This document shows, in pieces, positions 10,301 through 63,015 of a DNA stretch of 64,000 nt; the first letter of the stretch is position 1, and each line of letters begins with the position of its first letter. Made by a program: the position numbers and the translations under genes. Origin of the DNA: Octopus sinensis (lineage: Eukaryota); the NCBI RefSeq assembly GCF_006345805.1, contig NC_042999.1, positions 126,666,001-126,730,000 on the forward strand. The letters run 5' to 3'. Below the pieces are notes generated by a model. That model did not search any database. It had not been told where the DNA came from and saw only the letters and a program-made list of their open reading frames with translations.

Positions 10301-11835
10301 TTTCATTCCTTTCATAGAAATGAAACCAGAATTGTCAATGTGAGGTAGTCTGCAACAAAAATTCATGAACTTTGCATTTTCCTCTCTAATGACAGGTGTT
10401 GCTGAAATTAATCTTTCCAGTAGCACATAATTGCATTCTAATTGAGACATTTTTTCAATGCAAGATACTCTCTTTATTTCCTATGCATCTGATTGAGCAT
10501 TCCAGCCATCACCATCTGCCTAGGACTTAGATAATTAAGTCGTTTATATAAATTAACACATTTATTTTTTAAGGCAACAAGGTATAAATTAAGGGATATT
10601 AGAGTGCCATTTCTTACTGGTTAAGCAACTTCATTGACTGATATTTTTCTATAGCTTTTGTTTTTAACTCATTTCACTCCTTTTCGAAAACTGATACTTC
10701 ATTTGAAACAGCAAAGCAACATAACAGGATAACTAAAATTGCCCAAGATCTACAAAAATTTACTCTAGAAATCAGTGTATTAAGTATTTGCTTTAACCCT
10801 CTAGCATCCAGAATTCTTGCAGCTTTGAGATTTCAATGACATGATTATTTATTTTTATAATAACGTAAATAAAGTAAGTGTGAGAGACTGGATCTGGTCA
10901 TTTAGATGCTAAAGGGTGAAGTTAGAACCCATAACTTAAAGCTTTCACATTGGTGACTGATACCTGCTGGAAAATAAGGGCCCAGTAATTTTAATATGCA
11001 GCATCTGAAAGGTAAGACAAGTTAATTGTAAGGGTATATGGAGTTCATCTGTGAATCTTTACCAGTCTCAAAAGTTTGTTCCCTGAAAAGCTAAATTTGA
11101 AGCATATTCCCAGACATGTAACATCTCTCCTGTAGGATATGTTAGGGTTAGTCTTTGATGTAAAGATACATGAGGTAGCAAGATCAATTCCCAGACCAGA
11201 CTGTGTTGTGTTCTTGAGCCAGACACTGCTTCATATTGCTCCAGTTCATGCAGCTGTAGCAGTGAGTTGCAATGTCACTGGTGCCAAGCCACATTAGCCT
11301 TTGCCTTTCAATTGGATAACATTGATGACATGAAGGGGAGGCTGGTATGCATTGCCGACTGCTGGTCTTCCATGAACAACCTTGTTCCTTGGAGTGGAAC
11401 TTTCTAGGTGCAATCCCATGGTCATTCTTGACCAAAGGGGGTTTCACCTTTATAGCTGTTGGTAATGAATCATTTCAGTCTTATTTTGACGTAATATATT
11501 ACATTGAAAAAACAAGTTTCCAAATATTTAAAATTAGAACAGGTGTCTATTTAACAGCTTAACCCTTCAGATTTTGAAAGTTTCTTGCTGTAAGTATTCT
11601 TGTCTAAATAGTATACAGTATCTAAATTTGCATTGACACTTCACTCCACTAAGCATGTAAAAAAAAAATCCACATCAACATTAGATGAAACTTGTTAGCT
11701 TCTTTTTAAAACTATTGCCATAAGACATTAATTTATATTACTTTGACTTTTCAATTTGCAGGCTACCACAAAAACCATACATTAAAGATACAATGACCAA
11801 CTAAGATATCTTGTTTACATTAAGCAGAAGCAACC

Positions 11836-14800
11836 ATGTTAGTGCACCATGTTGAAGGAGTGTGTACTTACACATATGACCAGGATCTTTATATCAATAC
11901 AAGTAACATTCGATCAAACTCTCTTCTTGACCTTTGCTGCCAATATGTTGTTCAACATGCTTCATTAACTTTGCAAGCCTTGGATTATCTTCCATCACAT
12001 CTCTATAGAACTCTCACAGGATTTGCAGTTGTTGGCCATCGAGATAGGGCTTTAAACTTCTTATTACCAAACTGGCCAGATCAGAAAATGAGTGTCTTTG
12101 ATTTAGTTCATGATCATTATACATCATTTAGTACAGTAGTACCTTGTACATGGGCAGAAGAGAAATACTACTTACCCAACTTCATTATCACAACATTTGT
12201 TCATAAACTACTTCATTGCTTAGAAAGGGAACTTCCTCTAACATTGCAGTTGTTGGACTTAAGCGGTTTTAATATAGGTAAGTGCTAAATACTTTGACAT
12301 TTCATATGAAATCAATGTTTTTTAAAGTCAAATGACTGGTACTTTGTATTAAATCATTTCTCATATTGCTTCTGGGCCACTTTCTCAAAATCTTTAACTG
12401 TTAAAAGAGTATGTTTGTAATCAAGTCATTTTCCATAAAAATCAGTTTCACTCTTTCGAGAATTTCAGTTTATTACCTGTAATTTCCGCAGACTCTGCCA
12501 GCTTTCATCCTGTTTAGTTTGCATGTTTACAAGTCCCTGAACTTAATGGTCAAACTATTACCAAAACGATTTTAAATAAGCATCAAGATCGCTTGACTTG
12601 ATGCAGGCATTGGCGTGTGGTTTGTCAACAGTCAACTAATAAATGAAATGGTTAGGGGGATCTGACAAAAATATATCCAAGGTGTGGATGACTATCGTTG
12701 GCAATGGGTTTTTAGAGCTATAACTTAAGACAAAAGTTTCCTTAGGAGACGGATATTTTCTCAGTATCACATTGTTTTCTATTTTACCAACACGCAAGAA
12801 CGCTTAAGTAAAATGTAATACTGAAAAGGTGAAATGCACCTATGTTGTGTTAAAAACACACAAATGTTACTTAACTCATAAAAAGGGAATATAAAGGATG
12901 GGGGTTCCCATCAACTTCCCAGTTGAAATGGGTACTTGTACCAGTGTATAAAACATTTCACCACTTTTGTTTTAATTCTGAATAATTTCAACGTCAGTAT
13001 ACACACAGCTGATAAAATGGCACATCTAAAGGCCTAACTACAGATTTCTGCCCCTCCGATATTCGATGATCATAACTTTCAGAAAAATGGATATTTTTAA
13101 ATAAAATTTCCTGCGAATATGTATTATATCATGTAGATTCTGAATATACAAATTTTTTTTGGCGCGGGGGGAGGGGGCGACTTTAGGAGGGGGGTTGCAT
13201 ATTTTTAAATGAAATTCTCTGCAAATATACCTCGGACAGGAAGGGGGTTATTTTTTAAAACCATTTCCCACTCGAGGGTGTTTCGGAACAAGTCGTCCAT
13301 ATTTTATTTTCTCCGCTTTTCCGATGTAGTGAGAAAAGTTCAAATGGGGAATTATTTAATTCATTACAGATTATGTAACAAAATTAATTTTTAAAAAATC
13401 TGCGAATGAGATGAAATAGATCCACAAACTACACACTTCTATATTTAACTGAGCGTGCATATTTCTTATTTATGCTTCTGCCTTTCTATTAGATACGTTT
13501 ACCTGGGAATTTACTAAAAGAATAAAATCGTATGCAACAGATTAAGTTGTCTTAATAGCATATTTTTGTGTACCAGACCGTTAGGTGTTATTTTTAGCAT
13601 AACGAGCTTTCTGTTGAGGGCTTCATTTGCCTTCATTGCACGGATGAACAAATACACAAAACGGGGAAACTGAAACAAATACGGACGACTTGTTCCGCCC
13701 CCCCCCCCCGAGCGGGCTACCCGAAGATAAATGACATGGACCGTACCCCCCCACTTTTCGGTTACACTTTCAACTATGATATAGTGCACAAACAAATTAA
13801 GATTGGGATGGTTTTTAGAGTAATCAATAAACTGAATGTTTGGGGGGAATAGATTATAAAGCTAAATCGTCACTGGTCACTAATCTGAGAACCCAGTCGA
13901 ACAAGAACTACCTTATCGCCCGCATAACCGATATGGTCTTACAATTTATCTCAATTTGCAGCATCATAAGCCATAAAACTCAAGGCATTAATTGCTAGGA
14001 AAACGAACCACGTGTACGCCATTATATTTGCACGATACAACCTAACACGTTCGAGTTACATCGTTACCAATCAATATGCTATGCATATTATAAATAGTAA
14101 TAAAATACAGTAAAGAATTCAGAATTTAATACAAGACATGGATTCTGTACTGCACTGTAATTTTTAAAAAATATTAGAGGGGTCGTTTGCCGGGTACTAT
14201 TTAAGAAGATTGGTCCCGGTGCGCGCATTCGCTAGTCGATCCTACGAATACCTAGCTAAGTAAATAAAACAAATTTTTTTTTACACAAACTAAATGTTTT
14301 AAAACAATGGATCGACTAGTCACGACTAGCGCGGATGCGCATCGGGACCACTCTTCTTAAATAGTTTGTCGTAGGAAAAAAAAAAACTGTTTACTTTTCC
14401 TATGCGTATAGGTTAGTTATACTATAACTTCAACTCACTAACAATATATCTAGCATATGAATTTAATTTTGAAGCAGAAATCTTCATACCAAGTTGTGAA
14501 AATGACACTATTCAGAATACCAATTTGTGAAATATATAAAAAAAAAAAAAAAATGAACGGATGTCGATATTTTCATTTCTGTTTAGTGTCTTCGGGGGAC
14601 ACACTACTCTTTTTACAGTAAACTGTTAATTAGGTAAGAACGTAACGGCGGTGTTGCAATTTTTTGGCTCTAATTTCTGAAAATGATTGACCGCCGCCAT
14701 GTGAGCCTCACTTCAGAATAAAAATGGCATCCATATTGTCGATGAAGAAATTGCCGGAACGAAATTCAGAATGGTAACCGATAAATGAAATAGGATTGTT

Positions 14801-17800
14801 AAATGGAAATCAAATAAATGCTAGATAAATCAGACATATTAAGTGTTCAATTGATATAAACGATAACGTAAATAACGGTGGTAGAAACGGAATATATTCA
14901 TGAACAGCGAACACACAAAAAATTCAAGTAAATAAAAAGAAAATTATACCTCCAATACACTCCTTTATTCTTGACACGCATTACGTGAAAATGAACAATT
15001 TCTGATTAGAATAATAATAAAAAAAAAAAAGAGTGAGTCTAAACAGTCATTTTTCCACAGGTGTGTCTTTTTCCCTTAATGTTGTTAAACGAAGCCAAAT
15101 TAGTTAATAAGGCCAATAGGGGGATTTGAGAGCCACGTGTTCGTTAACACGGATGGAGAAAAAAGTTCTTCATTCATTCTCTACATTCATTGTCTGAAGA
15201 CCTTTGAAAGTAGCACATGGAACATGAGAGACAAGTGTGTAGAGTTTGTGTGGTGAATCTTCATCTTCATTACGTCGGCGAGAAAGCTTAACACGCACGC
15301 GGAAAGGTACATGTCGGATGCCTTTAGACCAAATGTGTTTGTTCAGCTTTGTGTCAATACGAACATCCTTGGTTCTCATCATCTTTTCAGCGAACAACTT
15401 GATCTTTTTTATGGCTTTTGGTGCCTTTTTCTTCAGCTTCACGCCATAGACTTTCTTGTGTAGATGAATGGTACATTCCTTAGTAATAACATCATTCATA
15501 GAAGACTTCTTCCTCTCAAACTTTTGCTTCGCCATCTTTAGTCAGAAAGACCGGAACGAGGCTTGAGGCTTAATTTATATCAGTCGCCACTACTGCCACC
15601 TAGCAGCGAGACTGAAGGGGAATAACTCTAAACTACACTTAGTTTTCGCTTTCCTACTGCAATTGTTTACTTTCTCTTTTGTTATGCTACTAGATAAGTA
15701 CATAATTAATGCGGCTTTTTTTCAACAAATTTTATTCAACAAAAACAATAACAATATTTATCTTTAAATGACGGTCTGACCGTCTGGGATGGTGAATATG
15801 GTCTGGAATAATCATTTAAACATGTTTTTGTTCCATGTTATTGTTTTTGTTGAATAAAATTTGTTGAACAAAAAAAGCCGCAATAATTATGCACCAACCC
15901 AAGAGTATTGTAAACTAGTTATTGTAAAATAACTAATTTTATTTCTTATATCCTATTTAATAAAGATTTATATATCAAATCATATATGGTAAAATTTTTT
16001 TTCAAGATTATCTGTAGAACTTAATATATGTCGTAATCTGGACTCGGAGGCGTATCAACTCGATATGACACAACTAATTGGAAGGAGAGGGGAAGTTGGT
16101 ACTAGAAGATGTGTAAGAATCATAGGGGCAAGGCAGAAAATGTGTCTGGATGAAGTGGAGGCAGACGATGGAGCAGAATGTCACCTGGTGGATATAAAAG
16201 TAGAACCCACAGAGGGTTTATGATGTCCTTCCCAGGCCATCCAACCTGTTTACTTAAGACATAAATGAAAATACCTGCATGACACTTGTGTTCTAAGAGA
16301 GCCCCCGCTCTCCTGAACACATCCAAAGCAGCTGTTCTGAGGCACTAAATGAAGGAGACTGTGACAGCATTCGCATTTAGATTCTCAAGTGATGTTCAGC
16401 AAGAGGATCAAGTGACAGTGGAGATGTCCACACTACGTTAAGGGAGCACAGCTGAAAAATGAACTAAGGATATCTCTGATAGCTTGATTTCTACAGTACA
16501 CAACTGGGTGATGAAAGTTGAGCTAGAGAATGAGCTAAAATTTACATAAAATATTACTGAGAATGTGTTGATACCACATATTTTGGTTTCTGAAGCAACA
16601 AGTTAGCTCATCCTAGTGGAGTTAACTGTATATTGGGAGAGGAAGGGAGCTGAGTTCTAGAAGGTGGGCAATCAAAGATTTGCAGATCAAACATTGGGCA
16701 TTGCAAAAATGAGCAGAAGAAGAACCATCTAGAACAACTTCTAGAGGTTGCTGAGAAAGTATCTACTTTGTTCTAGCTGAAGAGAGGTGAGTTGTGGGGT
16801 TAGTAGAGCACCATATGTTATAAGACCCAAAACATCCAGTAACTCCAGGATTCAGTACTGGTGATGTGTCTAGGTACTGAGTCTGTAGACATTGAATTAC
16901 ATAATTGCTTAATGCATATACTCTTTTATTGGGTTCAGTCATTGGATTGCAGCCATGCTGGGTCATCACCTTCAAAAGGTTTTAGCTGTATTGACCTCTG
17001 GCACTTATTTTATGAAGTAAAACCCAGAAACGTATTTACCTTTTAAGAGCAGAAAAACAAAGTTGACATGCATGTAAAAGCATGGTGTGGAACAAATATA
17101 TGCAGTATATTTGTTCCACACTATGCTGGTATACATTTGAAATATTTTCACCTCATGTATATAAAATTTTGAAGCAGATTATTTACTCCATCATTATTCT
17201 GAGTGCCTCTATGTGTGATCTTTACGTTGGCAGAAAGATTGCATATTGCAAAAAAGTCTTAACAACATCAGAATGAATTATCAATTTCATGTATATATAT
17301 GTGTGTAATTTATATATATATAGTGTAGATCCTAGTAGGGTAAAAAAAATCAGTGTATTTCCAATTCAGCACTCTATGCGAGCTCTTGGCTATCTACAAT
17401 CTCATACAATAACTGAGAAAAATTGGAAATCCACTGATGTACAAACTCCAGGTGCTTTACTAGTAAAAGCAGTATATAAGCATTATGAAAAGTACTATAT
17501 AAGGAGATGGAGAGCAAATATAATACAACTTTGATATTAGTTACAGTTGTTTCTGTACCACTCCATTCAAACTACATTGCATGTAAATAACTGTGATGGT
17601 TGAATACATCAGAGTGGTGCTTCATCAAACTAGCATTAAGTCATACCTCTTTTCATTGTGTAAAGAACATATGTATTTTATGTTGTTTGTATAGGGAGGA
17701 AACAGAATAAAGAGTTCAAAAATAATAATAAAAAATAACATTTTCTATGTTAACCACTAAAGGTTCACAAAATGATCTAGAACAATATAGGTCAATACAA

Positions 17801-20800: not shown

Positions 20801-23199
20801 ATTCAAAACAATGTGAATAAATAAGCATTATATTTGACAAAGTAATCTGAATGCTTAAGGGTTAAAGCTTTTGGGAGACTCAACTTCACATATAGGACCT
20901 GGGGTGATTTTTTTAGAGACATTTATTTTTGGAAAAAAAAAAAATGGTGCATCTTATATACTATCAAATAGTCATTTTCTAAACTAGAATGAAAGAATAA
21001 CACACTTCCTTCATTCCACTTTGAGGAAGTGATACCACTTCCTTCATTCCACTTTGAGGAAGTGATACCACTTCCTTAGCTTTGCAATCAAGTAGAAAGT
21101 GTTGGGTGCAGAACATCAGCTGAATGTAATGATGAATCAACTCTATTTAAGAGCTAATTCATGGCTGGATAATGTTGAGCTTCATTTTTTTTTTCATGCT
21201 AGATAGGACATGGACCAGGATAACAAAGCAAATGTATGTCAGAATAAAAGTAAACATATGGGCAATTCATCTGAGTTGTTAGAATTAGAACAGATAGAGG
21301 TCTGCCCACCCATGCGGTAAAGGTGGTGCACCTATATTTGATTAGACAAGCATAGGGGTACAATGTAGAAGCGACAGTGGTATAAGTGAATGTACAACAG
21401 AACTAACAATTGAAATGAACCCCAAATTCAGCTCAAGAATTTAATTGTACTATAGGTGCAGGTGTGGATGTGTGGTTAAGAAGTTTGCTTCCCAACCACA
21501 TTATCTCATGTGTGTGGTACCTTGGGCAAGTGTCTTTCACTACATTGAAGCTCATCATTTTCCACCCATGAATTAGCTCTTATTTGCTATATGGAATCTG
21601 AAAGAGGCCCATCATATATATAACTAGTGACTGAAATTTCTGGCAATTTCCTGTGCTTGAGAAGCCACATTGAGCTAAGTGAAATCACAGTTGTGGCCAG
21701 TGCCACGTGAAAGGTACCTTTGCCGATGACATGTAAAAGACACCCAGTATACTCAGTGGAGTGGTTTATGTTAGGCAGGCCATCCAGTTGTAGAAACCAA
21801 GCCAAAACAGACTGGAGTCTGATGGTAAGCTCTCTGGCTTATCAGCTCCAGCCAAACTGTCTTACCCATGCTATCATGAAAAATGGATGCTAAATGATGA
21901 TATATATATATATGTGCGTGTGTGTGTGTTTGTATCTTTGTCTTGAGATCACATGGTTGTTGTAAATGAATGTCACTGTCATTCTTTTCCAATATTCTAC
22001 AAAAGCATGTCTGGCCAAAGAGGAAATATTACCCTACTAGGAAATAGATGAGAGCTGGTAACAGGAAGGGCCTCTGGCTATAGAAAATCTGCCTCAATAA
22101 GCACTGTGCAACCCAATCAAGCATAGAAAAGTGGACATTAAAATGATGATGATACAAAGTACTCAACAACTTAAGTGAAATGTTAATTATTATTAATATC
22201 AGCCTGCCATTTCTGTTCACAACCTATGTGATCATCAAAAGTTTATAGGTACTAAGCTATCCTTTTTAAAATGAAATATCAAGTAAAATATGTATGTACA
22301 TGTATATAATCTCTTGTTTGACTTCATGTTCAATGACATGAATGGAAATGGTGTCTTATGCAGAATTTGATGTTATGTGTCTTATTAATTATGATTAATA
22401 TTGTTGTGTTCTGTTAAATTTCTTTCTTTTCAATTTACAGTATATTCATGAAATCACTCTAAGGTACAACCATTTGATGGTGCGTGGAGTAGTAGCCTTG
22501 TCACCTTTCCTTCGAATAATGACAAGGCTGACCCATCTAGATCTGTCTTGCAACAACATACGCCTGCAGGATCATTTTAACTTTGGTACACAAATTTTAG
22601 GAGAACTTTTTGCACAGCTCAGCTGCTTGAAAGAACTGAATATGAGCAACAACTGGATAAAAGGAAACCTTCATTTACTACTTTCTAGAATATCACAGCC
22701 TCTTGAATCTCTCTGTATCTCTGGTTGTGGTATATCTATTGGAGATTTAAACTATCTGTCCAAATGTATTCACACCACTGGCCTAATTCATTTGGACTTG
22801 AGTGAAAACAATTTAAGTGACAAATTGCAACCCATGTTAGAATTTTTAAGTGCAGCCCGCAAAAACTTAAAGCATTTTGAAGTACAAAATTCCAGGCTTT
22901 CAAGTCACCACATGGAAGATCTTGGAAGAATGGTTTGTCAAATGGAAAAACTTGAGTACCTTAATTTGTGTTCAACAGTAATTTGTGAGTCTGACATGTT
23001 TAAATTGTTACGAACAATCTGCAATGCTGCTAACTTAAAACACATATGTTTTACTAGTCATATTGAGATGGGTCTTAGTATAGACAGCACTGGTTTCATA
23101 GCAGGAGATATACCAAAACAAATTCACACAATACTTCTACAGAACAGAAGAAATACAGGACTTAAAGTCTATTTTAAAATTACTCCTGATACTTACTAA
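11836..23199 (+). CDS. LRRC14: Leucine-rich repeat-containing protein 14-like (LRRC14/PRAME family), 4 coding exons, 483 aa
   Basis: Exons 11836-12277, 19035-19112, 20364-20536 and 22441-23199 all have GT-AG sites and compatible phases (1,1,0), total 1452 nt. N-terminus [23 protein letters not shown] resembles the PRAME/LRRC14 N-terminus. C-terminal LRRs include [22 protein letters not shown] and [14 protein letters not shown] context is gcaaccATG; the exon acceptor is at 11761. LRRC14 versus LRRC14B/PRAME orthology is not resolved. Confidence 0.85.
14196..14365. repeat. Foldback/MITE-like inverted repeat
   Basis: Arms ACTATTTAAGAAGA.TGGTCCCG...CTAGTCGATCC at 14196-14242 and 14309-14365. Confidence 0.8.
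15170..15535 (-). CDS. RPL31: 60S ribosomal protein L31 (eL31), intronless divergent copy nested in the LRRC14-like intron
   Basis: Intact 121-aa ORF with eL31 motifs ([52 protein letters not shown]). No introns. Pyrimidine-rich leader just 5' of the ATG; AATAAA on - at about 14964-14969. Confidence 0.93.
15701..15891. repeat. Foldback/MITE-like inverted repeat upstream of the RPL31 copy
   Basis: About 53-56-bp near-perfect arms (15701-15753, 15836-15891) around a spacer of about 80 bp. Confidence 0.85.
16050..16790 (+). mobile_element. Decayed HERO-like RLE non-LTR retrotransposon, 3' part
   Basis: Broken frames read [62 protein letters not shown] and EVAEKVS, matching the HERO zinc-knuckle/endonuclease order. 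Confidence 0.7.
17870..18520 (-). mobile_element. Decayed L1/Tx1-like LINE 3' end
   Basis: [29 protein letters not shown] (degenerate CCHC) followed by [19 protein letters not shown]. Confidence 0.55.
19380..20010 (+). pseudogene. Tc1/mariner transposase relic
   Basis: Frameshifted Tc1 DDE motifs: [57 protein letters not shown]. Confidence 0.9.
21003..21077. repeat. 33-bp direct tandem repeat (2 exact copies plus a partial)
   Basis: CACTTCCTTCATTCCACTTTGAGGAAGTGATAC at 21003-21035 and 21036-21068. Confidence 0.9.
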
Positions 23200-26542: not shown

Positions 26543-27512
26543 TTAAACTAAATATCTTGATCCACAAAGGGAATCTTCACAAAAAGTACAACTATGGGGT
26601 TCAGTTGTACATAGACCAGCTGCATCTGGTGGTGAAAAAGAAAAGAAAAAAGACAATTTTAGCTTAGAAATAACTGGACATTTTTTTTTTAAAGCTAGCT
26701 GATTTGTTGAAACATTACAATTTACGAACCAAATATAGCAGGAATGTATAGCATATCATAACATTTTTTTGCTTAATGTTATTTACACTTTCCTTTGTAT
26801 ACTAGAATAGACATGATGATTGGCTAAATTCACATTTGCAATAATTATTGGTGTAATTATTTTACAACCGATGTTTTTAAAATTTTTATTCTTTATTCTC
26901 TATTTTTGCAAAGTGAAGTAGCAGTGGCTATAGTTATCTTGTTAGTGTGTAGTGAGTTTATTCTGTGACCTTAGTAAACTTATTATGAAACAATTTGGTT
27001 CAAAATGTCAAACTAAAAAAAAAACAAAAAAAAAAACTGAGGACAAGACACACTGTATTCAATAATAAAATACATGTAACTTCTGAAATCTAAAAGCATA
27101 AAGATGACGAGAAAGACTGAAACTGAAAAAGTACTTAGAAGGATAAATATATACTTACCAGTAGTTACACTTATCGGCATAGCAACACTACTACAGAGAG
27201 AACATCTTCGGTAAGGAATCTCCTTACAGGGAAGTAAGGATTTACAGCATCGACCTGTAATAGTTGAACAAGATATTTTCAAAAAAACCAGAATAAACTG
27301 ATTAACTTTAGTTTAGTGCTGCCTGCTTTTAGCAGTGATACTGAAATGTATGAGTGTGTGTGTATCTCTCTCTATATATATAAGAAAGTAGCAGGTTAAA
27401 AGAAGCACTGTCAGACTATTTAGAATCAAGAACTCAAAGTAAGAAGTTTGAAAGTCAAAATTTTAATCCATAACTCTGACAGAATATATTTTGTCAGACT
27501 CACAATTATTGA

Positions 27513-27549
<37 letters not shown>

Positions 27550-30500
27550 GTGCAGGCTTAGTGGTTAAGGTGTTGCACTCATGATTACAAAATCGTGGGT
27601 TCAATTCCCAGACCAGGCATTGCTTTGTGTTCTTGAGCAAAACACTTCATTTCATCAACTGTCATGTGGTACATGGTGCACCTGTACAAATAATGTTGAT
27701 TTGATGGAAGGAGTAAGCTTACATGTACACAAACGTGTGATCATTATAAACAAATCATGTGTGGTTATTTGACAAGAAATTGCTGAACCCTTATATATTG
27801 TCTAATGACAGGAAAGTCCATGATATATATATATATATGCTGAGTTCAAAGGACTTCAACAGCCATTGCATTTTTTCCAGCCAGTTGGTGGGTTGGCTTT
27901 GTGAGTAAGCACCAGAAATATTTGGGCATTTGCTTACAGACTTCCCAATCAGTCTGGGAAATATGTTGAACATACACATGTCAGTGTAATGTTCTGCCCA
28001 CTTACACATGAATTCAGTCGATTGAACAACTTCATTTTCAAATGAAATTTTCATTGAAGCTTCATTTCCAAATGAAGAGGTCCATCACCATCATTTGAAA
28101 CTCTGTACATGATATAGAAATTAAAGAGAGAAAACTCTTACCAAATGTATGGTTTCCAGAACAAGCTACTGACATAACATCCACATCTTCAAGAAGTAAA
28201 ATAGTTAAGGAGCAATTCAACATTTCAAAATGAAAGCCAAGTCCACATTTGACCTTAATACTGAACATCGTTTTCAACAAAATTTGTTTCAAATATTGAT
28301 GTTGTTCAATTTCCATATGCTATTATATTGTATATCAATAAATCCCACTAACTATTCAAGAATATCCATCAAAAGCCGATAGAGGTGGGCACCAGAGTCT
28401 TTTTAGGGTGTTCACCTTGCAAAGCCCTCAACCAATTTGGCTTCATAGAGAGGGCAAAGAAGAGGGTCAATTCTCAACCACTTGGGCTTCATAGAGGAGA
28501 AAACTACCAGATGTAATTTGGATAAAAAGTGCTGATATATGGACTGCTGCTGGGATGCAAGTGGAGAGATCTAATGAATCCTCAGTTGGGTTCACTGGGT
28601 GAAGATGTCTGATGTTGAAAGGCTCAAAACACCTGATGACCTCAGGATACAACACTGATAATGTGTCCCAGTTCATCCAAATGTAACTTGCACAATATTT
28701 GAAGACCACATTAAATAACAAGTTTGACAGAATTTTTACCAATTTTTAAGCATATATAATAGGTAAAACTTTAAAATGTTCAAGTGGCCTAGTGGATAAA
28801 AAACATTATTAACCATAGTTTAGAAATAAAGATTCTTAGTTCAAATCCAGTCTGATACTAAGTATACACCCAGAAAAAAGATGAAGTCAGTTGAACTGTA
28901 GATGTAAACATTAAAAAAAAAAGTGCTCCCTAAAGATGAGGTTAACAAACTAATAAATTACAATCCTGTTAAAATATAACAAGTAATCCCAAAACACTAT
29001 TCAAGCTAATGAGGGAGCCTCTAGATCAGAGGTCCTCAACTTGGGTAGTACCATCCCCAAAGAAAAGGGTATTAGGCTTTAGAGGGTGGTGACGTAACAT
29101 ATTTTACCTATTGTAGTAATTATATCATAGAGGGTAAAACTAGTAATGGTTATTAAAATAAAATGAAGTTTCATAAGGCAGGGAAAGTCATTAACTTGTA
29201 ATGTATAAAGTAAATTTATAACTTTTATCTTTATCAATTTTTTTTATCATTTCACAGTTAAAAGCTTACATGATCCATTTTTAGGGAAAAATTTATAAAT
29301 TATTATCATCAATGGAGAAAGTTACTTTAGTTATCATACCTCACTCGCCACTTATGTAGGTGCTAGGCATAACAACTACTTATGGTTTATTTACATTGCT
29401 GTAACTTAGTGGTTCAGCAAAAGATACCCAATAAACTAATTAGTCATCAGAGGCATAAACAAGACTGAAGGGAAGAGGCCAAATAAATTATCGGACACAC
29501 TATAAAACGACACCGCTGACCAATAAACTAGGTACTAGGCTTTAAAAAACACATTGCCTTGGAGTCGATTTGTTTAAATAGAACCATTTACCACAATACC
29601 CCAGCATGACTGTGGTCCAATGACTGAAACTAGACAAAACATAAAATGATTTTACTTTATCTGTTAATTTAACAAGAAAAAAGGATATGTTCTCCACAAA
29701 TTGGACAATCTTCTTCAAATATGATGATTGAATGTTCTATGGAAGAGAGCATTTTTTTGACCGCTGCTGCAATAGAATCCCATCTGGAGAAGTGGTACAT
29801 CCGGGCATTTAACCATTGGCAGATTGATGAAATAATTCGTAATTCTGTATAAAAGATAAAAAGGAAATGGCTTTAAGTTAGCAAAAGTGCAAGTTTTAAA
29901 AGAATAAACAGAAATCAAAGGTGGAAGATATTTAAAAAGAAAAAGATAGAGAAAAAAATCATAAAGGTATGTTCTTTATGTCCATGCCTACCCACCTCTG
30001 CACACAATCTATCCCCAGACAAACCTCTACCCCATAACTCATCTTCCAACACCTCCACCTCTCCCAATTGGACTCATCACCCACTGTATTTCCCACCCCT
30101 TTATCTCTCACTCACCTGCACAAACCTACTGGCACACATTTTGTCCTTATTGAATCTCTTCTCCCATAATATATCCTTCAAGCACACCCCTCCCTCTATC
30201 TACTAGCTGCATTTTCCTCCACCTTCCATCTCCTACTCTCTGTTCACAATCTTGTGAACTCACCCACCCACCCACTTACCCTCACCAATCCCCAGTCCAC
30301 TTTGCTATATACACCAACCTGTAACTAAGGTACGTCTCCCCAACACCACCATAACATTTCCATCGTCTTCTCCCTCACCCCCGAGACAGCCATGTTTCTT
30401 TTCTTCTGCAAGACATCTTTTTTCCGTCCCTTGCTACTACTCTTCCCACTCAGTTGCAGTGTCCTATTTTGCAAGTTATTCAGTGACTTCATAATTGCTG

Positions 30501-42500: not shown

Positions 42501-45500
42501 CCAAAATATTCTACTTGTTCTCTGTTCAAACTGACCAGATCTGGCATCTCACACCTACCTTAGAATGTCGTTTTGAACATAAACAATCACATCAATGAAA
42601 TCTCAAGGTTACAAGATAAAGCATGATTAATTCAAAGCATTGTGAATAAATAAGCATTACATTTCACAGAATAATCTGAATGCTAAAAGGTTAAACATAT
42701 ACACAGTTTAGGTAGTAATAATAAATGGAAATGGAAAAAGTCAAGTCAGTTTAATTTACCTGCATATTATAGGAAAGTGGACCTTCCAAAAGACAACATC
42801 CCCGTTTTTCATTGCTGAGGCAAATATGGAATATTTGGATTTTTCAGTGGAACTTTGCATCAGCAGATTCCGATCATCTGGGTGTATTATAGCAGGGAAT
42901 GTCTCATATGTGTTAGACCAGGCCATAGCTAATTAGAAAACAATCAAGTATATTAGGTTTGATGCATAACATAGTAAATTACAACATGATAAAATATATA
43001 ACAGTGAAATTACTTTATTTTTCTACTAATTTCAGCCAAGAATTTAATATAGTAAATAAATCAATTTCCCCATATGAGCATGAGAGCAATAAACTTTCAA
43101 AAATTGCCCTTCTGGCAGCTAAGCAAGAGGTAAAAGTGAAATTTCTTCTAGTTATAAATAAATCTATTAAACAAATATAGGAAAAATTTTGTCATTTTGA
43201 AATGCTTCAAATTAATATTAGGAAATAAATGCAACAACATTAAGACTAAAAATCTACTTGAAAGGCCTGAATATTATTTAGACATTCACAAAATATTTGA
43301 TTTGATAAGAGAGAGCTGGTGGATCTTATTTTCTTGTTTCATTCTTAAAAATAACTTATTTCTAAAATGTCTTCAAACAGATGATTAATTCTTTTGTGAC
43401 TATATTTCTGATGAAAAATACTGTTTAAGTGCTTCTAATAATTTTGAAAATAAGTAAAAATTGTTAGGGATTTAGACAAATATGTAACTTCATTATTTTG
43501 TCATCAATAATCGCAGCAAAATCATCATCATTTAATGTTCGCTTTCCATGCTGGCATGGGTTGGACAGTTTGACGAAGGGCTGGCGAGCCAGAAGGCTGC
43601 CTCAGTCTCCAGTCTGATCTGGCAAAGTTTCTACAGCTGGATGCCCTTCCTAACACCAACCACTCTGAGAGAGTAGTGGGTGCTTTTACGTGCCACTGGC
43701 ACAAGGGCCAGTTAGGTGGTACTGGCATCGGCCATGCTCAGTCATTGGGTATGACTCCTTCATGTATCACCTGGTTGACTATACGGGTGACTAGACTATA
43801 GCCGACACCACCAGATATTTTAAGCATCTCTGTGGTGATTGCTGATGGGCCGAGGGCTTTCCCTGTCTTCATACCTTTAATTGCTTTATCTATTCGGATA
43901 GCTGGTCCCTCTGTTGGGTCAACATTCGGCAAACTCTCTTTCTCCCATTCATTCTCTTCATTTAGTAACCTTTCATAGTGGCGTCTCCAAGTCTCTCTCC
44001 TTGCAGCATCACTAAATGCGAGCGAGCCATCATCCATGCAGAAACATTCCTCTCCTATGATATCATGATTCTCTCTCATACACTGTCTTGTAACACGAAA
44101 CACCTCAAGTCACTGGTCCTCACGATGCAAAACATTGACAAATTTTTTCTTATCTGCTTCCTTCTGGCTAAATAAACCTGTCTCCTAGCTTCCTTTCTGG
44201 CAGTCTGATACAATTCCCTGCTACCACCATTCTTCCAGTCCTTCCACACCTGTCTCTTCTCCCTAATGGCCCTGTCAACTACATTGTTCTACCACCACAT
44301 TACCTTGGGTTGAGAGGGGACTTTGCACCATCCACAGATCTGGTCAGTGGCCCTCAACAGGTTGTCCTGTAGAAACCTCCAGTTGTCTTTCACATCATGT
44401 GATGCTATATTGCTCTCTATTTCGTCAAAAGCTTTGAGTAATATGTCTCTGAATCTCTGTCCATTTGTTGGATCCTTAAGCTTCCAAACCCTTCTCCTCC
44501 ATGCTAGTAGTCTTCTGGGCATCCATTTAGCCATGATCCTAACTACTAATCTATGTTGTGAGGTGCATTCTTCATCTGGGAAGGTTTTGGCATTTATAAG
44601 TAGCCATCTTTCCCGTAGGTGAATAGGTAACTGACAGGTTTCCTGAAGTTAGTGTTACAAACCATAAGATCATTTGCATTGAAGAACTCCAACAGCCTGG
44701 TTCCCTCCTCATTGTGAGAACTAAAACCATAGCCTCCATGTATGCCATGGAAACCTGCATGTTGTCCAACATGCCCATTGAAGTCACCAGTCACAAAGAG
44801 AAGGTCCCTGTCATTCGTCAATGCGGTAGTCTGCAAGTGGGTGTCATGAAATCGGTCTTTCTGTCCATCAGGTAGCCCCGGCTGAGGGGCATAGGCCGAG
44901 ATAATGGTTGCTAACCCATGATGCAGCACTAATCTAATTTTAAGTATTCTATTGCAGACTCTGAGTACCTTGATTACCTTAACCCATTTCTCCGCAAGAA
45001 GTATACCCACACCCCCAACCCCGTCAGTGTTCCTTGCCCAGAAAATCTTACACCTATGTTTTTTGCCTGTGAGGAACCTAGCAGAACCACCTCTCCAATT
45101 TACTTCTTGGATGCAGCACAAATCTACACATCTCTGTTCAAGCATGAACATTTTCACATGAAATATGAACCCTTTAAAACAAAGTGTTTTGTGTCATGGA
45201 ACTGAAAGTAGTCTTATAAAGGTTCGCATCAAAAAATTAAAATAAGCAAAAAAAATCAAAACAAAGATGAAACTAAAATGAGTGACTAAAAGCTTACCAA
45301 CTGCTGCTAGTGCATAGGAGATTGTCTTCAGGTACTCAAAGTTTATCTCCTGTCCTTTTAAATAACTGCTGTTATTCTTTTTCCAAATGTCTTCATACAC
45401 TTTGGAGCAGTCGATGACCTGAAAGTTGAAATTAGAACTTATGTGGAAATTTAAAAGAAAAATCAAGACAATACACTTGAAATAAAGTTCATACTATCTT

Positions 45501-59700: not shown

Positions 59701-60938
59701 TCTACAGCTGAGTGAACTGGAGCAATGTGAAATAAAGTGTCTTGCTCAAGAACACAAACACAGTCTCGTGCAGGAATTGAACTTACTACCTCATGATTGT
59801 GAGCCTGACATGCTAACCAGAGAGCCATGAGCCTTCACAGATAGATAAATATATATAGAGAGAAAGAAAAAGTTTGGTGAAAGTAAGGGCTAACTGTAGT
59901 GTTCATGGTTTGAGATTAGCAGAAGGGATATTGTCAGCACCTGTGGTCTTGTTGGTTTGAAGTAACAGGCACAGCCCTTACCACTGTAGTCAGTGATTAC
60001 TCCATCTGCTAGAGATAGAAGCCCAGTATCATACTGTATCATGTTAAAATAAAAACAGGAAGGATATGTTGGAAAATGTATTCTTGGGTATACAAAAACA
60101 TGTAAGGGCTATGAGTGCAATGCTTTTTGCTCCTAGGGTTGTTTGATCATGAGTGACCCAGGGGCTAAGCAATAAGTTGGAAAGTTTTGGATTGGCAATA
60201 ACATTTGAAGATATAGCAACATAGAAAGAAACTGTTTACAAAAAAGAACAAAAACTGTCATATACCCTGCTGTTAATAAAATGCTTACTGAAAGTAAACC
60301 CAATCTTTTACTTAACCCTTTTGATACCAATCTGCCCAAGACTCACCCTGATTCAAAAATACAAACTTCCTATATAAAATAATCTAAATTAAAGCACTTC
60401 CCATTAAAATTCCATGTTAATTCATGTTCCATTTATCAGATTAATAATGCTCAAGATATTTTACTAAATTTTTCCTTATTTTCAAAATTAATTGAAACAA
60501 ACGCAGTATAGTTCAACAGAAAATAGTAAGAAAAGGGTTAAACATTTTTTCCTTAATATTCCTTTTGTTGTAGGCGGCAAGCTGGCAGAAACGTTAGCAC
60601 GCCAGGTAAAATGCTTAGCGGTATTTTGTCTGTCTTTACGTTCTGAATTCAAATTCCGCCAAGGTTGACCTTGCCTTTCATCCTTTCGGGTTCAATAAAT
60701 TAAGTACCAGTTGTGTACTGGGATCGATCTAATTGACTGGCCCTCCTCCCCAAAAATTTCAGGCCTTGTACCTAGAGTAAAAAAGAATATTTCTTTTGTT
60801 GTAGGTTTGACATAATATTGACTGCAGAAACAATTTACAACACCAAAAATTACCAGAAACTGATCAACATATTTGATTTCTTACTAAAAGAAAATGGTTA
60901 CATGTATCCTTTGTTTTCTTCTAATCAACACCATCATG

Positions 60939-60969
<31 letters not shown>

Positions 60970-63015
60970 TCAGTGCAATATAGTATTATGTGATATAATA
61001 TAAAGGAGTGCATATATGGTTGTATGGATACAGAATTTACTCTGTAACCATATAGTTCTGTCTCATTCCTTGGCACCTTATGTAAATGTCTTTTACAGAA
61101 GCCACAAGTCAGCCAATACTTATGAGTAGCAAGTACCTCTGTCAGTACTCATGCAAAATTCAGGCAAACTAAATGTAAATGAAGGAAAATTAAAATTAGT
61201 AGTTAGTTATTTCAAAAGAGACACTCCATACAAACTGTAAATCCAAGGATATGTACTGATTAACAGAATGGTGCATCCATCACAGGTAATAAATGTAGAC
61301 AAATAAATGCAGGTGATGATATTACATTTATTAATCAGTTCCAATCATGTTGGCAATTAGTGGAAATGTTACATCAATCAATACATTTGGTTGCACAAAT
61401 ATAAAAGATTTATCTAAAACCATAATGCTTAGTGGAAAAGGAAATTTTCCACCAGCCATCTCATCATTCTGAGCATAAATGTTTGTGTGTGTCTGTGTGA
61501 ATAGTTGTATTCCATATCTTTGCATGAAATGATGACATGTTGACATTTCTTGTTAACAAAACATCATGTAGTGCTGTACTACTTGAAAAATATTTAAGGG
61601 TTAATGACAGTAAAATAATGCTTCAGTAATAAGCATTCATCCAACTCATGCTAGCATGGGAAAATGGACATTAAATAAATGAATGGTATTAATTCTTAAC
61701 TAACTCTCAAGTCTAATCGCTGCTAAAAACTACTATTTTGGTGTTGGAGGTGGAACTAGACAGTTTGAAGAATCACTGAAAGAGGATGGCCGTTTTACAT
61801 CCTCTGTTTGCTGGACAAAAGCTGATGGTGAGTAAAGTATAATACAAAGTGTTTGTAAAGTATTTGTGTATTTCCAATGTAATAATGTTTGCATCCAAGC
61901 AAGTATTTTAGTTAACCTTTATGATCTTTTCTAGTTATTGGGATACCTTTTGTTAAATGTTTCATTGATAAGTTAAAAGACATTGCCATATATTTAGGTT
62001 TATTAAGAATTTAATTTAAAAACTGTTAGTCACTTAATTGATATTCATTTCTGGTCATTCATATGCAGCACATGACCATACCAGTGCAGTCGTCTCTCTT
62101 GCACACCACATCTGATACTTCTTATGTACAACATTGCTCTCAGGGTGCTTACACTCTGTAGTGTGTGCACACTGATTTTACATATCCAGTGGATCATACT
62201 AGCTTCATTTCTTTCAAGCCTACGCATGTCTTCCACAGTCATGGGCCATGTTTCACTGCCGTGTAGCATGGCAGTTCACACTCATGCATCATACAATCTA
62301 CCTTTCACTATGAGTGAGAGGCTCTTTGTCACTAGTAGAGATAGGAACTTTCTGAACTTTGAAAATAATATCTTATGTTTAATTAGGGTGGCAAGCTGGC
62401 AAAATCATTAGCATGCTGGACAAAATGCTAAGCAGCATTTCATTTAAATTCTTTCAAAGTAGACTTTGCCTTTCATCCTTTTGGGGTTGAACTCTAGGGT
62501 TGATGTAATTGACATACCCTATCCCCTAAAATTGCTGGCATTGTGCCAAAATTTGAAATCAATATCTTATGTTTAAATGTTGTTTTATTCATAGCTAAAT
62601 CCTATTGTTCTTGATTCAAATTATTTGATATATTGCACTAACTAGTCAATATTTACTTAAAATAACTTAGCAATAACTCTAAGATAAATGTTAGGGAAAC
62701 AAAATACCAAATGGAAATTTTTGCCAAAAACCTTCTCTTTCTCTGACCTTTACAATCTTATTTACTTGGTCTTATAAATACATAGTTTTTTTTAAATACC
62801 AACTCTTTTACTTCAGGATTGCATTGTTATTATTGGACCTTAGTTGCCATTTTAAAAGTTATCCCTTTCTTTTGTGAAGGTTTTGTGGTTCAATTGGTAC
62901 ATTTAAAGGTTCAATCTGATCAGCTAAATCTCTATAAATCTTTCATATTGAATTAATTCTTTTGTTTTCAGGGCTCTCCCGTGAAATCATCTGTGCTCAG
63001 CGAAAGAAAACTTAA
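50726..63015 (+). CDS. METTL18: Histidine protein methyltransferase 1 homolog (METTL18/Hpm1), 9 coding exons, 294 aa
   Basis: Exons 50726-50810, 51086-51150, 53077-53254, 54738-54820, 55061-55135, 58962-59101, 60805-60903, 61712-61827, 62972-63015. Phases join, total 885 nt. Motifs: MSFCFNF, DLIPNKYEGGLQIWECSIDL, SAM-binding EIGCGAGLPG, FQDFNSEV, FSGDW, FDIILTAETIYN, AAKNYYFGVGGG. Confidence 0.93.
51970..52154. mobile_element. hAT-like MITE inserted inside a SINE
   Basis: TIRs CAGGGGCGTAT / ATACGCCACTG; interrupts the TA/TG tract of the SINE at 51805-52350. Confidence 0.75.
59492..59837 (-). mobile_element. tRNA-derived SINE (family 3) with target-site duplication
   Basis: tRNA-like head plus a CTTGAGCAAGACACTT core; flanked by CAGATAGATA at 59482-59491 and 59838-59847. 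Related copies at about 11180-11460, 27547-27790 and 56570-56830. Confidence 0.75.
60572..60790 (+). mobile_element. tRNA-derived SINE (family 2)
   Basis: ggcggcaagctggcagaa..gttctgaattcaaattccgcc..gcctttcatcctttcggg. Other copies at about 24066-24295, 35510-35700, 46430-46600, 62385-62570 and 63930-64000. Confidence 0.8.
60904..61711 (+). other. U12-type GT-AG intron in the METTL18-like gene
   Basis: 5' end GTATCCTTT at 60904, branch-like TTCTTAAC at 61693-61700, AG at 61710-61711, no long polypyrimidine tract. The junction gives NGY-I-LIAAKNYYFG in frame. Confidence 0.88.
62045..62345 (-). mobile_element. RTE LINE RT C-terminal fragment
   Basis: MLHGSETWPMTVEDMRRLERNEASM..RRLHWYGHVLHM. 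Confidence 0.8.

Follow-up and report, generated by a model that had tools for sequence, protein, structure and literature searches.

A U12-type AT-AC intron very probably divides the zinc-finger module of octopus GTF3C4

Judged from its splice signals and from protein homology, the minus-strand segment 28196-29688 of the Octopus sinensis window (the whole stretch of DNA analysed, 64,000 nucleotides) is very probably a true AT-AC intron of the U12 type, the sixteenth intron in octopus GTF3C4. As proposed in the original prediction, this intron splits a zinc-binding motif: on one side of it lies the CxxC knuckle, on the other the Cys/His ligands that come next in the C-terminal module.

The GTF3C4 gene and its spliced product

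The exon model was established by tblastn and by splice-site search against protein P0001. In this model, the GTF3C4 (TFIIIC90) coding region covers positions 26543-50571 of the minus strand and consists of 19 exons and 18 introns encoding 726 amino acids, the translation being in agreement with public entries. Two public proteins, XP_029633986.1 from Octopus sinensis and CAI9719955.1 from O. vulgaris, were 100% identical to the 726-residue protein obtained with the 29689/28195 junction. The zf-TFIIIC family (PF12660) was detected in the spliced product with 32.8 and 29.6 bits, above the Pfam gathering cut-off of 23. The N-terminal TFIIIC_delta beta-propeller (PF12657) was detected with exon 6 alone (E=0.001), and both families were present in the full-length cluster representative. 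Furthermore, the C-terminal 103 residues alone matched the human 8CLI_B chain with an E-value of 1.6e-5. The identity to the public Octopus entries, the zf-TFIIIC score and the human match bear out the predicted gene identity and, on this homology, the gene in the window is the GTF3C4/TFIIIC90 orthologue.

When the concatenated stop-free N-terminal segments were compared with the PDB by phmmer, zero matches were obtained, the propeller being too diverged from the human one. A homologue search with a three-sequence profile returned two cephalopod proteins and nothing further, and the Rfam scan of the window gave zero matches at the gathering score. Isoform P0005 (708 aa) was considered as a possible skipper of the 18-residue exon 17 and was rejected, as it differs at the N-terminus only.

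Exon 16 (29689-29844, minus strand, 156 nt) encodes ...ELRIISSICQWLNARMYHF...IIFEEDCPICGE and the first base (C) of a Leu codon; its 3' end reads ...TGT CCA ATT TGT GGA GAA C, with the last base at 29689. Exon 17 (28142-28195, minus strand, 54 nt) starts at 28195 with TT CTT GAA GAT GTG ... ACA TTT G, encodes (L)LEDVDVMSVACSGNHTF(G) and is followed by GTAAGAG; its length of 54 nt is kept in cuttlefish and Solemya. Exon 18 (27159-27254, minus strand) encodes (G)RCCKSLLPCKEIPYRRCSLCSSVAMPISVTT and is preceded by cag and followed by gtaagt, and exon 19 (26543-26625, minus strand) encodes (D)AAGLCTTEPHSCTFCEDSLCGSRYLV and then a stop.

The junction between 29689 and 28195 yields CPICGELLEDVDVMSVACSGNHTFGRCC / CPICGELLEDVDVMSVACSGNHTFG, to which RCC is added by the next exon. 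In this product, 13 residues separate the second and third Cys. Alignment with residues 742-796 of human GTF3C4 (PDB 8CLI_B) was gapless, with C-x2-C-x13-C in both proteins, so that the human spacing given in the original prediction was correct. The x13 spacing was present in 80 of the 98 homologues.

Splice signals of intron 16 and competing junctions

Intron 16 (28196-29688, minus strand, intron 16 of 18) is 1493 nt long and lies in phase 1; a bias of minor introns against phase 0 has been discussed (PMC7367187). Its 5' splice site, ATATCCTTT (29680-29688, minus strand), directly follows GGA GAA C and agrees at 9/9 positions with the U12 consensus [A/G]TATCCTTT. The branch-point sequence TCCTTAAC (28204-28211, minus strand) agrees at 8/8 positions, and its second A is located 9 nt ahead of the last intron base (some 10 nt from the AC end). 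The intron ends with TCCTTAAC-tatttt-AC, that is ...gcTCCTTAACtattttAC up to 28196 on the minus strand, the terminal AC being read from the sequence at 28196-28197. The donor, branch site and terminal AC that had been predicted were thus recovered base for base. At the 3' end, there is neither a separate polypyrimidine tract nor an AG. The same mRNA junction can be placed equivalently as CA-TA and AC-TT only, neither of which is a splice-site type. Among the 18 introns of the gene, U12 signals are confined to intron 16; the remaining 17 are ordinary GT-AG introns, with U12 scores of 2-7/9 at the 5' splice site and at most 6/8 at the branch site.

The frequency of these motifs alone was rejected as evidence for a U12 intron, since the counts in the 64 kb are at chance level for both ATATCCTT (7 found, 3.65 expected) and TCCTTAAC-N4-12-AC (1 found, 1.06 expected). 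It is the position of the motifs that is informative: ATATCCTT falls exactly where protein homology ends, the single branch-site-plus-AC match of the window falls exactly where homology restarts, and the reading frame is kept across the junction.

The chance frequency of single U12 motifs in the window could also suit another explanation, in which they are coincidental and a GT-AG intron is excised by the major spliceosome, giving the product CPICGEHILFSYVDVMSVAC.... The donor GT would be at 29672-29673 (ctt/GTTAAA) and the acceptor AG at 28187-28188 (ttgaAG/at, within exon 17), both on the minus strand. This junction also keeps the frame and is stop-free, so that the frame alone does not discriminate. 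The Pfam zf-TFIIIC score was likewise discarded as a discriminator (29.4 bits for the GT-AG product, 29.6 for the AT-AC product); it rules out read-through and exon-17 skipping only. However, the donor is a weak U2-type site, agreeing with MAG/GTRAGT at 4/9 positions as against 6-8/9 in every one of the gene's 17 real GT-AG introns, and the acceptor is a disfavoured AAG. The product would have an x15 spacing, found in 1 of the 98 homologues, and would break the gapless alignment to human GTF3C4; its HILFSY peptide occurs in no public cephalopod protein. In cuttlefish, the nearest downstream GT and the equivalent AG are out of frame. In addition, the U12 signals at this site are conserved across phyla. 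GT-AG removal as the explanation for this junction is very improbable; GT-AG splicing could occur as a minor isoform.

An intron with AT-AC ends might also be removed by the major, U2-dependent spliceosome, and such a rare U2-type AT-AC class does exist (PMC1557818). Here, however, ATATCCTTT at the 5' splice site fits the U12 form perfectly, agrees with MAG/GTRAGT at only 4/9 positions and is not U2-like. The perfect TCCTTAAC lies about 10 nt ahead of the 3' end, where a separate polypyrimidine tract and an AG are both missing, which argues in the same direction. Furthermore, orthologous introns alternate in subtype, AT-AC in some and GT-AG in others, yet keep TATCCTT, which is typical of U12-type introns. 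We regard U2-dependent removal as still less probable than the GT-AG junction.

For a U12-type intron 16, U11 snRNP would recognise the 5' splice site ATATCCTTT, with U6atac pairing later, and U12 would base-pair with TCCTTAAC, the branch site some 10 nt ahead of the AC end. Removal of the intron would join 29689 to 28195, restoring the codon C/TT, and would link the CxxC knuckle of exon 16 to the Cys/His ligands of exons 17-19, which together form the C-terminal double zinc-finger module. From these signals, we infer a dependence on U11/U12/U4atac/U6atac.

The orthologous site in other animals and its annotation

The comparison of intron positions that had been suggested was carried out across molluscs, a nemertean, deuterostomes and a coral. 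U12-type signals were found at the same codon and in the same phase in seven other species belonging to Mollusca, Nemertea and Hemichordata. In O. bimaculoides, the orthologous intron (L001 29067-31801) reads ATATCCTTT...TCCTTAACtatcttAC, with the same ends as the intron of the window. The corresponding sequences are ATATCCTCT...TTCTTTAACatttgcAC in the cuttlefish Acanthosepion, ATATCCTTT...TTCTTAACaattaAC in the gastropod Patella, ATATCCTTG...CCTTAACatcagcAG (AT-AG ends) in the gastropod Haliotis, ATATCCTTT...CCCTTAACtgaagtAC in the bivalve Solemya, GTATCCTTT...TGTTAACagtaattgtatAG (GT-AG ends) in the nemertean Tubulanus and ATATCCTTT...TCCCTAACtctatgattAC in the hemichordate Ptychodera. As in octopus, the introns of Acanthosepion, Patella, Haliotis, Solemya, Tubulanus and Ptychodera lie at the third codon after CxxC in phase 1, with TATCCTT at the 5' splice site and, 8-14 nt ahead of the 3' end, a branch site resembling CTTAAC. 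They differ in their terminal dinucleotides, which are mostly AT-AC, with AT-AG in Haliotis and GT-AG in Tubulanus.

In the chiton Liolophura, the same site is occupied by a plain U2-type intron, G/GTAAGA...AG, which fits the model of U12-to-U2 conversion (PMC7367187). In the teleost Mugilogobius, there is no intron at the site, the CxxC and the next Cys lying within one exon, and the amphioxus and coral GTF3C4 genes are intronless. Since same-site U12-type introns occur in molluscs, a nemertean and a hemichordate, intron 16 is probably older than the protostome-deuterostome split. It would be a minor intron of old bilaterian origin that cephalopods and other lineages have kept, whereas elsewhere it was converted to U2-type, was lost, or is missing from a gene that has no introns at all. 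This one site would illustrate every known fate of a minor intron: retention, AT-AC to AT-AG and GT-AG switches, U2 conversion, loss at the site and an intronless gene. GTF3C4 would also join the ancestral bilaterian minor-intron genes, and it is missing from the human and mouse lists checked.

The original prediction held that the gene looks broken under GT-AG rules, and that such introns are often mis-annotated. In the current octopus annotation, the gene does not look broken. The AT-AC-spliced peptide is present in the RefSeq/ENA models of O. sinensis, O. vulgaris, O. bimaculoides, Argonauta hians and Acanthosepion pharaonis, so that the current models of five cephalopods already splice the intron correctly. 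Protein homology may in part underlie the public models. An exact match to the public proteins of O. bimaculoides and cuttlefish was obtained only when AT-AC junctions were used at the orthologous site. As the 726-residue product is identical to public proteins, the octopus gene is not mis-annotated.

The expectation of mis-annotation was confirmed for Solemya velum, in whose model the donor is read through and the next exon is skipped. Four other homologues carry the same read-through signature, and these four further models are probably mis-annotated at this intron. The five models (Solemya velum and the four probable ones) lose or scramble the zinc module. Whether an essential Pol III factor is predicted with its zinc-finger module depends on a single AT-AC intron, which makes this site a clean test case for annotation.

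Intron retention and comparison with known minor introns

Past the end of exon 16, the sequence reads CAT ATC CTT TTT TCT TGT TAA. The in-frame TAA (29669-29671, minus strand) is at the place predicted for an unspliced exon, and the product ends in ...CPICGEHILFSC*. No zf-TFIIIC match was found by Pfam in this read-through peptide, in agreement with the proposal that retention deletes the C-terminal zinc module. Retention would stop translation 7 codons into the intron (...CPICGEHILFSC*), and the whole zinc module would be lost. Because the premature stop lies upstream of two further exon junctions, the retained transcript is likely, by the standard rule, to be a target of nonsense-mediated decay.

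The closure of the unspliced frame 7 codons past the exon end might also mean that the exon truly ends at this TAA, in a truncated gene, a pseudogene or a short isoform without the zinc module. Against this, three more exons with good splice sites extend the conserved domain as far as a C-terminus that is itself conserved. None of the 19 exons is disrupted, conservation of the protein extends to five cephalopods, and the Pfam domain is missing from the read-through peptide. A true end at the TAA has a negligible probability.

In the human cryo-EM structure (10.1101/2023.05.16.540835), WH1 of TFIIIC220 is the docking site for TFIIIC90's C-terminal zinc fingers. A wider proposal combines two elements. 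GTF3C4 would be an unlisted ancestral bilaterian minor-intron gene, whose U12 intron, separating the first zinc knuckle from the remainder of the module, predates the protostome-deuterostome split; in addition, the efficiency of the minor spliceosome would gate full-length TFIIIC90 and, via tauB assembly, Pol III output in cephalopods, gastropods, bivalves, nemerteans and hemichordates. Taken together, this is unlikely. If it were true, the teleost, amphioxus and coral examined would lack such coupling. Given the U2-type intron of the chiton, the missing intron of the teleost and the intronless genes of amphioxus and coral, U12 status is not required for GTF3C4 function. The minor-spliceosome control of a Pol III factor put forward in the original prediction is unsupported and speculative, and the octopus intron reveals no new mechanism.

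Human GTF3C4/TFIIIC90 (PDB 8CLI, 8CLJ and 8CLL, chain B) has the same C-terminal zinc-finger module and shares the N-terminal TFIIIC_delta propeller, the N-terminal similarity between the octopus and human proteins being below phmmer detection. Judged from the teleost Mugilogobius, vertebrate GTF3C4 appears to be without intron 16, whereas octopus has one. GTF3C4/Gtf3c4 is missing from the lists checked from Olthof et al. 2019 (PMC6717393) for human and mouse, in which GTF2H3 does appear, and our literature search found no paper tying GTF3C4 to U12 splicing.

The octopus intron is of the same type as the vertebrate AT-AC U12-type introns of the MIDB tables (Olthof et al. 2019, PMC6717393), for example that of HSBP1 with the 5' splice site GGAATATCCTTT. 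In the human and mouse minor-intron tables of that study, ATATCCTTT, identical to the octopus 5' splice site, occurs 221 times and the branch site TCCTTAACT, also identical to that of octopus, 106 times. On these sequence features, intron 16 is a real U12-type case in a known class, in a gene outside the minor-intron lists checked, and it has in common with vertebrate AT-AC introns a short distance from the branch site to the 3' end, an AC end and phase 1.

Junction and splicing signals of intron 16

The minus strand of 28000-30000 was read and translated, and everything that the original prediction had described in the sequence itself proved correct at its coordinates. Exon 16 ends in ...GAA GAT TGT CCA ATT TGT GGA GAA C at 29689 (-) and is followed by the nine intron bases ATATCCTTT (29688-29680 (-)). 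When left unspliced, the frame continues past the donor as H I L F S C until a TAA at 29671-29669 closes it. Intron 16 (28196-29688 (-)) ends in ...ttgaattgcTCCTTAACtattttAC at 28196, after which exon 17 (28195-28142) reads TT CTT GAA GAT GTG GAT GTT ATG TCA GTA GCT TGT TCT GGA AAC CAT ACA TTT G and precedes GTAAGAG. Joining 29689 to 28195 gives ...EEDCPICGELLEDVDVMSVACSGNHTFG, and the exon at 27254-27159 contributes RCCKSLLPCKEIPYRRCSLCSS... after exon 17.

The spliced C-terminal peptide matched Pfam zf-TFIIIC (PF12660) with 32.8 bits (cut-off 23), and its top match among PDB sequences was human GTF3C4 (8CLI_B, E=1.6e-5); in the Pfam search, the read-through peptide gave no match. The alignment of query residues 42-96 with residues 742-796 of human GTF3C4 is gapless and sets human CSLCKEILPFTDRKQAVCSNGH opposite octopus CPICGELLEDVDVMSVACSGNH. 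Thus, the spacing that the original prediction gave for the human protein, C-x2-C-x13-C, is present in both species.

The roughly joined candidate exons found the GTF3C4 proteins of Octopus bimaculoides (P0001) and Acanthosepion pharaonis (P0002) and a GTF3C4-like protein of Haliotis rufescens (P0003). With P0001 as guide, a 19-exon model was built on the minus strand, from 50571 to 26543. The model yields a protein of 726 aa that equals XP_029633986.1 (O. sinensis) and CAI9719955.1 (O. vulgaris) residue for residue, and both entries carry the name general transcription factor 3C polypeptide 4. This match assigns the window to O. vulgaris/sinensis or to a genome almost identical to theirs. The same spliced peptide is present in N-terminal isoforms and in an Argonauta hians protein. 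Comparison with the current gene model, proposed at the outset, showed that the public models already splice at 29689/28195.

The donors of the 17 GT-AG introns of this gene score 6-8/9 against MAG/GTRAGT. Intron 16 alone matches the U12 donor motif [A/G]TATCCTTT at 9/9 and the branch motif TCCTTAAC at 8/8 positions, the other introns reaching at most 7/9 and 6/8, respectively. The branch adenosine is located 9 nt ahead of the last intron base, and the terminal dinucleotide is AC. Olthof et al. 2019 (PMC6717393) tabulated human and mouse minor introns, and their tables contain ATATCCTTT 221 times and TCCTTAACT 106 times. Intron 16 lies in phase 1, which is consistent with the bias against phase 0 reported for U12-type introns (PMC7367187). 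Over the 64 kb, motif counts were near chance (donor, 7 against 3.65 expected; branch plus AC, 1 against 1.06). The motifs alone are not rare; the U12 case rests on their placement exactly at both homology breakpoints with the frame kept.

Use of the GT-AG junction that the original prediction named as a refuting case (29674/28186; donor GT 29673-29672, acceptor AG 28188-28187) would interrupt the gapless match to human GTF3C4 and produce an x15 spacing; among 98 homologues, 80 have x13, 12 have x12 and 1 has x15. The frame would be kept, with CPICGEHILFSYVDVMSVAC as product, and Pfam does not tell the two products apart (29.4 bits, against 29.6 for AT-AC); however, the donor fits the U2 consensus at only 4/9 positions, the acceptor is AAG, and the product was in none of the public cephalopod proteins found. 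In cuttlefish, pairing the nearest downstream GT with the equivalent AG would break the frame. The GT-AG junction may correspond to a minor isoform beside the AT-AC product.

The orthologous site and the age of the intron

Loci of homologues were compared at a single site, phase 1 of the third codon past CxxC (slashes mark the 5' splice site; the branch and 3' end follow). Among cephalopods, O. bimaculoides carries aac/ATATCCTTT and TCCTTAACtatcttAC, and the cuttlefish Acanthosepion pharaonis aac/ATATCCTCT and TTCTTTAACatttgcAC; in both, models with the AT-AC-site junctions equal the public proteins exactly. A U12-type intron is also present in the gastropods Patella vulgata (gaaa/ATATCCTTT, TTCTTAACaattaAC) and Haliotis rufescens (aga/ATATCCTTG, ACCTTAACatcagcAG), the bivalve Solemya velum (gat/ATATCCTTT, CCCTTAACtgaagtAC), the nemertean Tubulanus polymorphus (aac/GTATCCTTT, TGTTAACagtaattgtatAG) and the hemichordate Ptychodera flava (gca/ATATCCTTT, TCCCTAACtctatgattAC). 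It is AT-AG in Haliotis, where the frame permits AT-AG only, and of the GT-AG subtype in Tubulanus. The intron of the chiton Liolophura sinensis (tcg/GTAAGATTT, 3' end tttttttttaaaAG) is plain U2-type.

In the teleost Mugilogobius chulae, no intron was found at the site, and CxxC and the next Cys share one exon. The GTF3C4 homologues of Branchiostoma belcheri (L008 301-2268) and Acropora (L010 301-2646) are single uninterrupted ORFs, compared with 19-20 exons in cephalopods, which suggests that a retrogene took the place of the original gene or that all introns were lost. GTF3C4/Gtf3c4 was not found in the human and mouse tables of Olthof 2019 in the copies searched, which may be truncated but do include GTF2H3.

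Since separate U12-type gains at one codon in molluscs, nemerteans and hemichordates are very unlikely, the simplest reading of these sequences is that the intron was already present in the protostome-deuterostome ancestor. The same reading would include later subtype switches in some lineages and a U12-to-U2 conversion in the chiton, in line with the direction of change advocated in PMC7367187; the teleost gene and the amphioxus gene, which has no introns at all, would be without it. The coral gene, being intronless, is uninformative on earlier history. Taken together, the chiton conversion, the lack of an intron at the site in the fish and the amphioxus and coral genes without any introns show that U12 status is dispensable for GTF3C4.

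The O. bimaculoides orthologue of intron 16 (L001 29067-31801) measures 2735 nt, against 1493 nt in the window, with ~92% identity across the shared parts. Two additional blocks, one of roughly 980 nt and the other of roughly 220 nt, are present in O. bimaculoides and presumably reflect inserted repeats or deletions.

Surroundings of the gene

Octopus, cuttlefish, abalone, limpet and Solemya all have a Methyltransf_16 (lysine methyltransferase) gene in head-to-head arrangement with GTF3C4 (homologue loci L001 1-1846, L002 1-851, L003 1-771, L004 1-303 and L011 1-121), and a Methyltransf_16 exon was weakly matched at 60776-61000 (+) of the window (E=0.0027). The arrangement suggests a bidirectional gene pair kept across molluscs. 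Within GTF3C4 intron 5 (45297-42929), ORFs in gene-sense orientation (44597-45193 (-), with more to ~43500) gave weak, sub-threshold matches to the endonuclease/exonuclease/phosphatase (E=1e-4) and endonuclease-reverse-transcriptase (E=5e-4) families and are probably a LINE fragment. On the strand opposite to GTF3C4 and downstream of it, a 266-aa stop-free stretch containing several leucine-rich repeats (22399-23196 (+); LRR_1, LRR_4 and LRR_6 matches) and a 154-aa stretch upstream of it (11824-12285 (+); no Pfam match) may belong as exons to a single LRR-protein gene. An uninterrupted ORF for a complete ribosomal protein eL31 (15173-15541 (-); Pfam Ribosomal_L31e, E=3.6e-39) may be nested in one of the introns of this LRR gene; either a processed retrocopy or a gene without introns could explain it.

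Consequences of splicing, annotation and known minor introns

By analogy with established U12-type splicing, ATATCCTTT would be recognised by U11 and TCCTTAAC paired by U12, with catalysis completed by U4atac/U6atac.U5. Retention had been expected to remove the C-terminal zinc module; indeed, the retained product read from the sequence, ...CPICGEHILFSC followed by a stop, is missing the final 77 residues together with the zf-TFIIIC domain. With two exon junctions downstream of its stop, a transcript that keeps the intron would be expected to undergo nonsense-mediated decay. TFIIIC90 contacts TFIIIC220 WH1 through its two C-terminal zinc fingers, which also help to build the rigid tauB scaffold (10.1101/2023.05.16.540835); any protein translated from the retained transcript would be unable to form this contact.

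The remark that AT-AC introns are often mis-annotated does not hold for the octopus models, which splice correctly, but it does for the Solemya velum model KAL5006845.1 (L011 58069-58663), which reads through the donor. Here T/AT ATC CTT is read as Y-I-L, giving ...CQICGGYILSMQYTLHVRLQSS, and the true 54-nt exon located after CCCTTAACtgaagtAC (L011 58610-58663, ...SLKEDNLVVTCSRGHLFG) is omitted; the zinc-finger motif is scrambled by read-through and exon skip. The homologous proteins P0013, P0021, P0114 and P0146 show [Y/N/D]-I-L precisely at the site, then a non-homologous or truncated tail. Reading through N/ATATCCTT would be expected to leave such a pattern, and mis-annotation is suspected.

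No paper linking GTF3C4 with U12 splicing was found in a literature search, and the single paper in which the two terms occur together is on an unrelated matter. IAOD covers 24 genomes, with molluscs unmentioned in the text of its paper; a 263-species study took minor introns orthologous to human ones as the centre of its evolutionary analysis, and GTF3C4 does not occur in its text. The intron class is textbook and the junction is already in RefSeq and ENA models; what the GTF3C4 intron adds is a minor point on evolution and a practical lesson for annotation.
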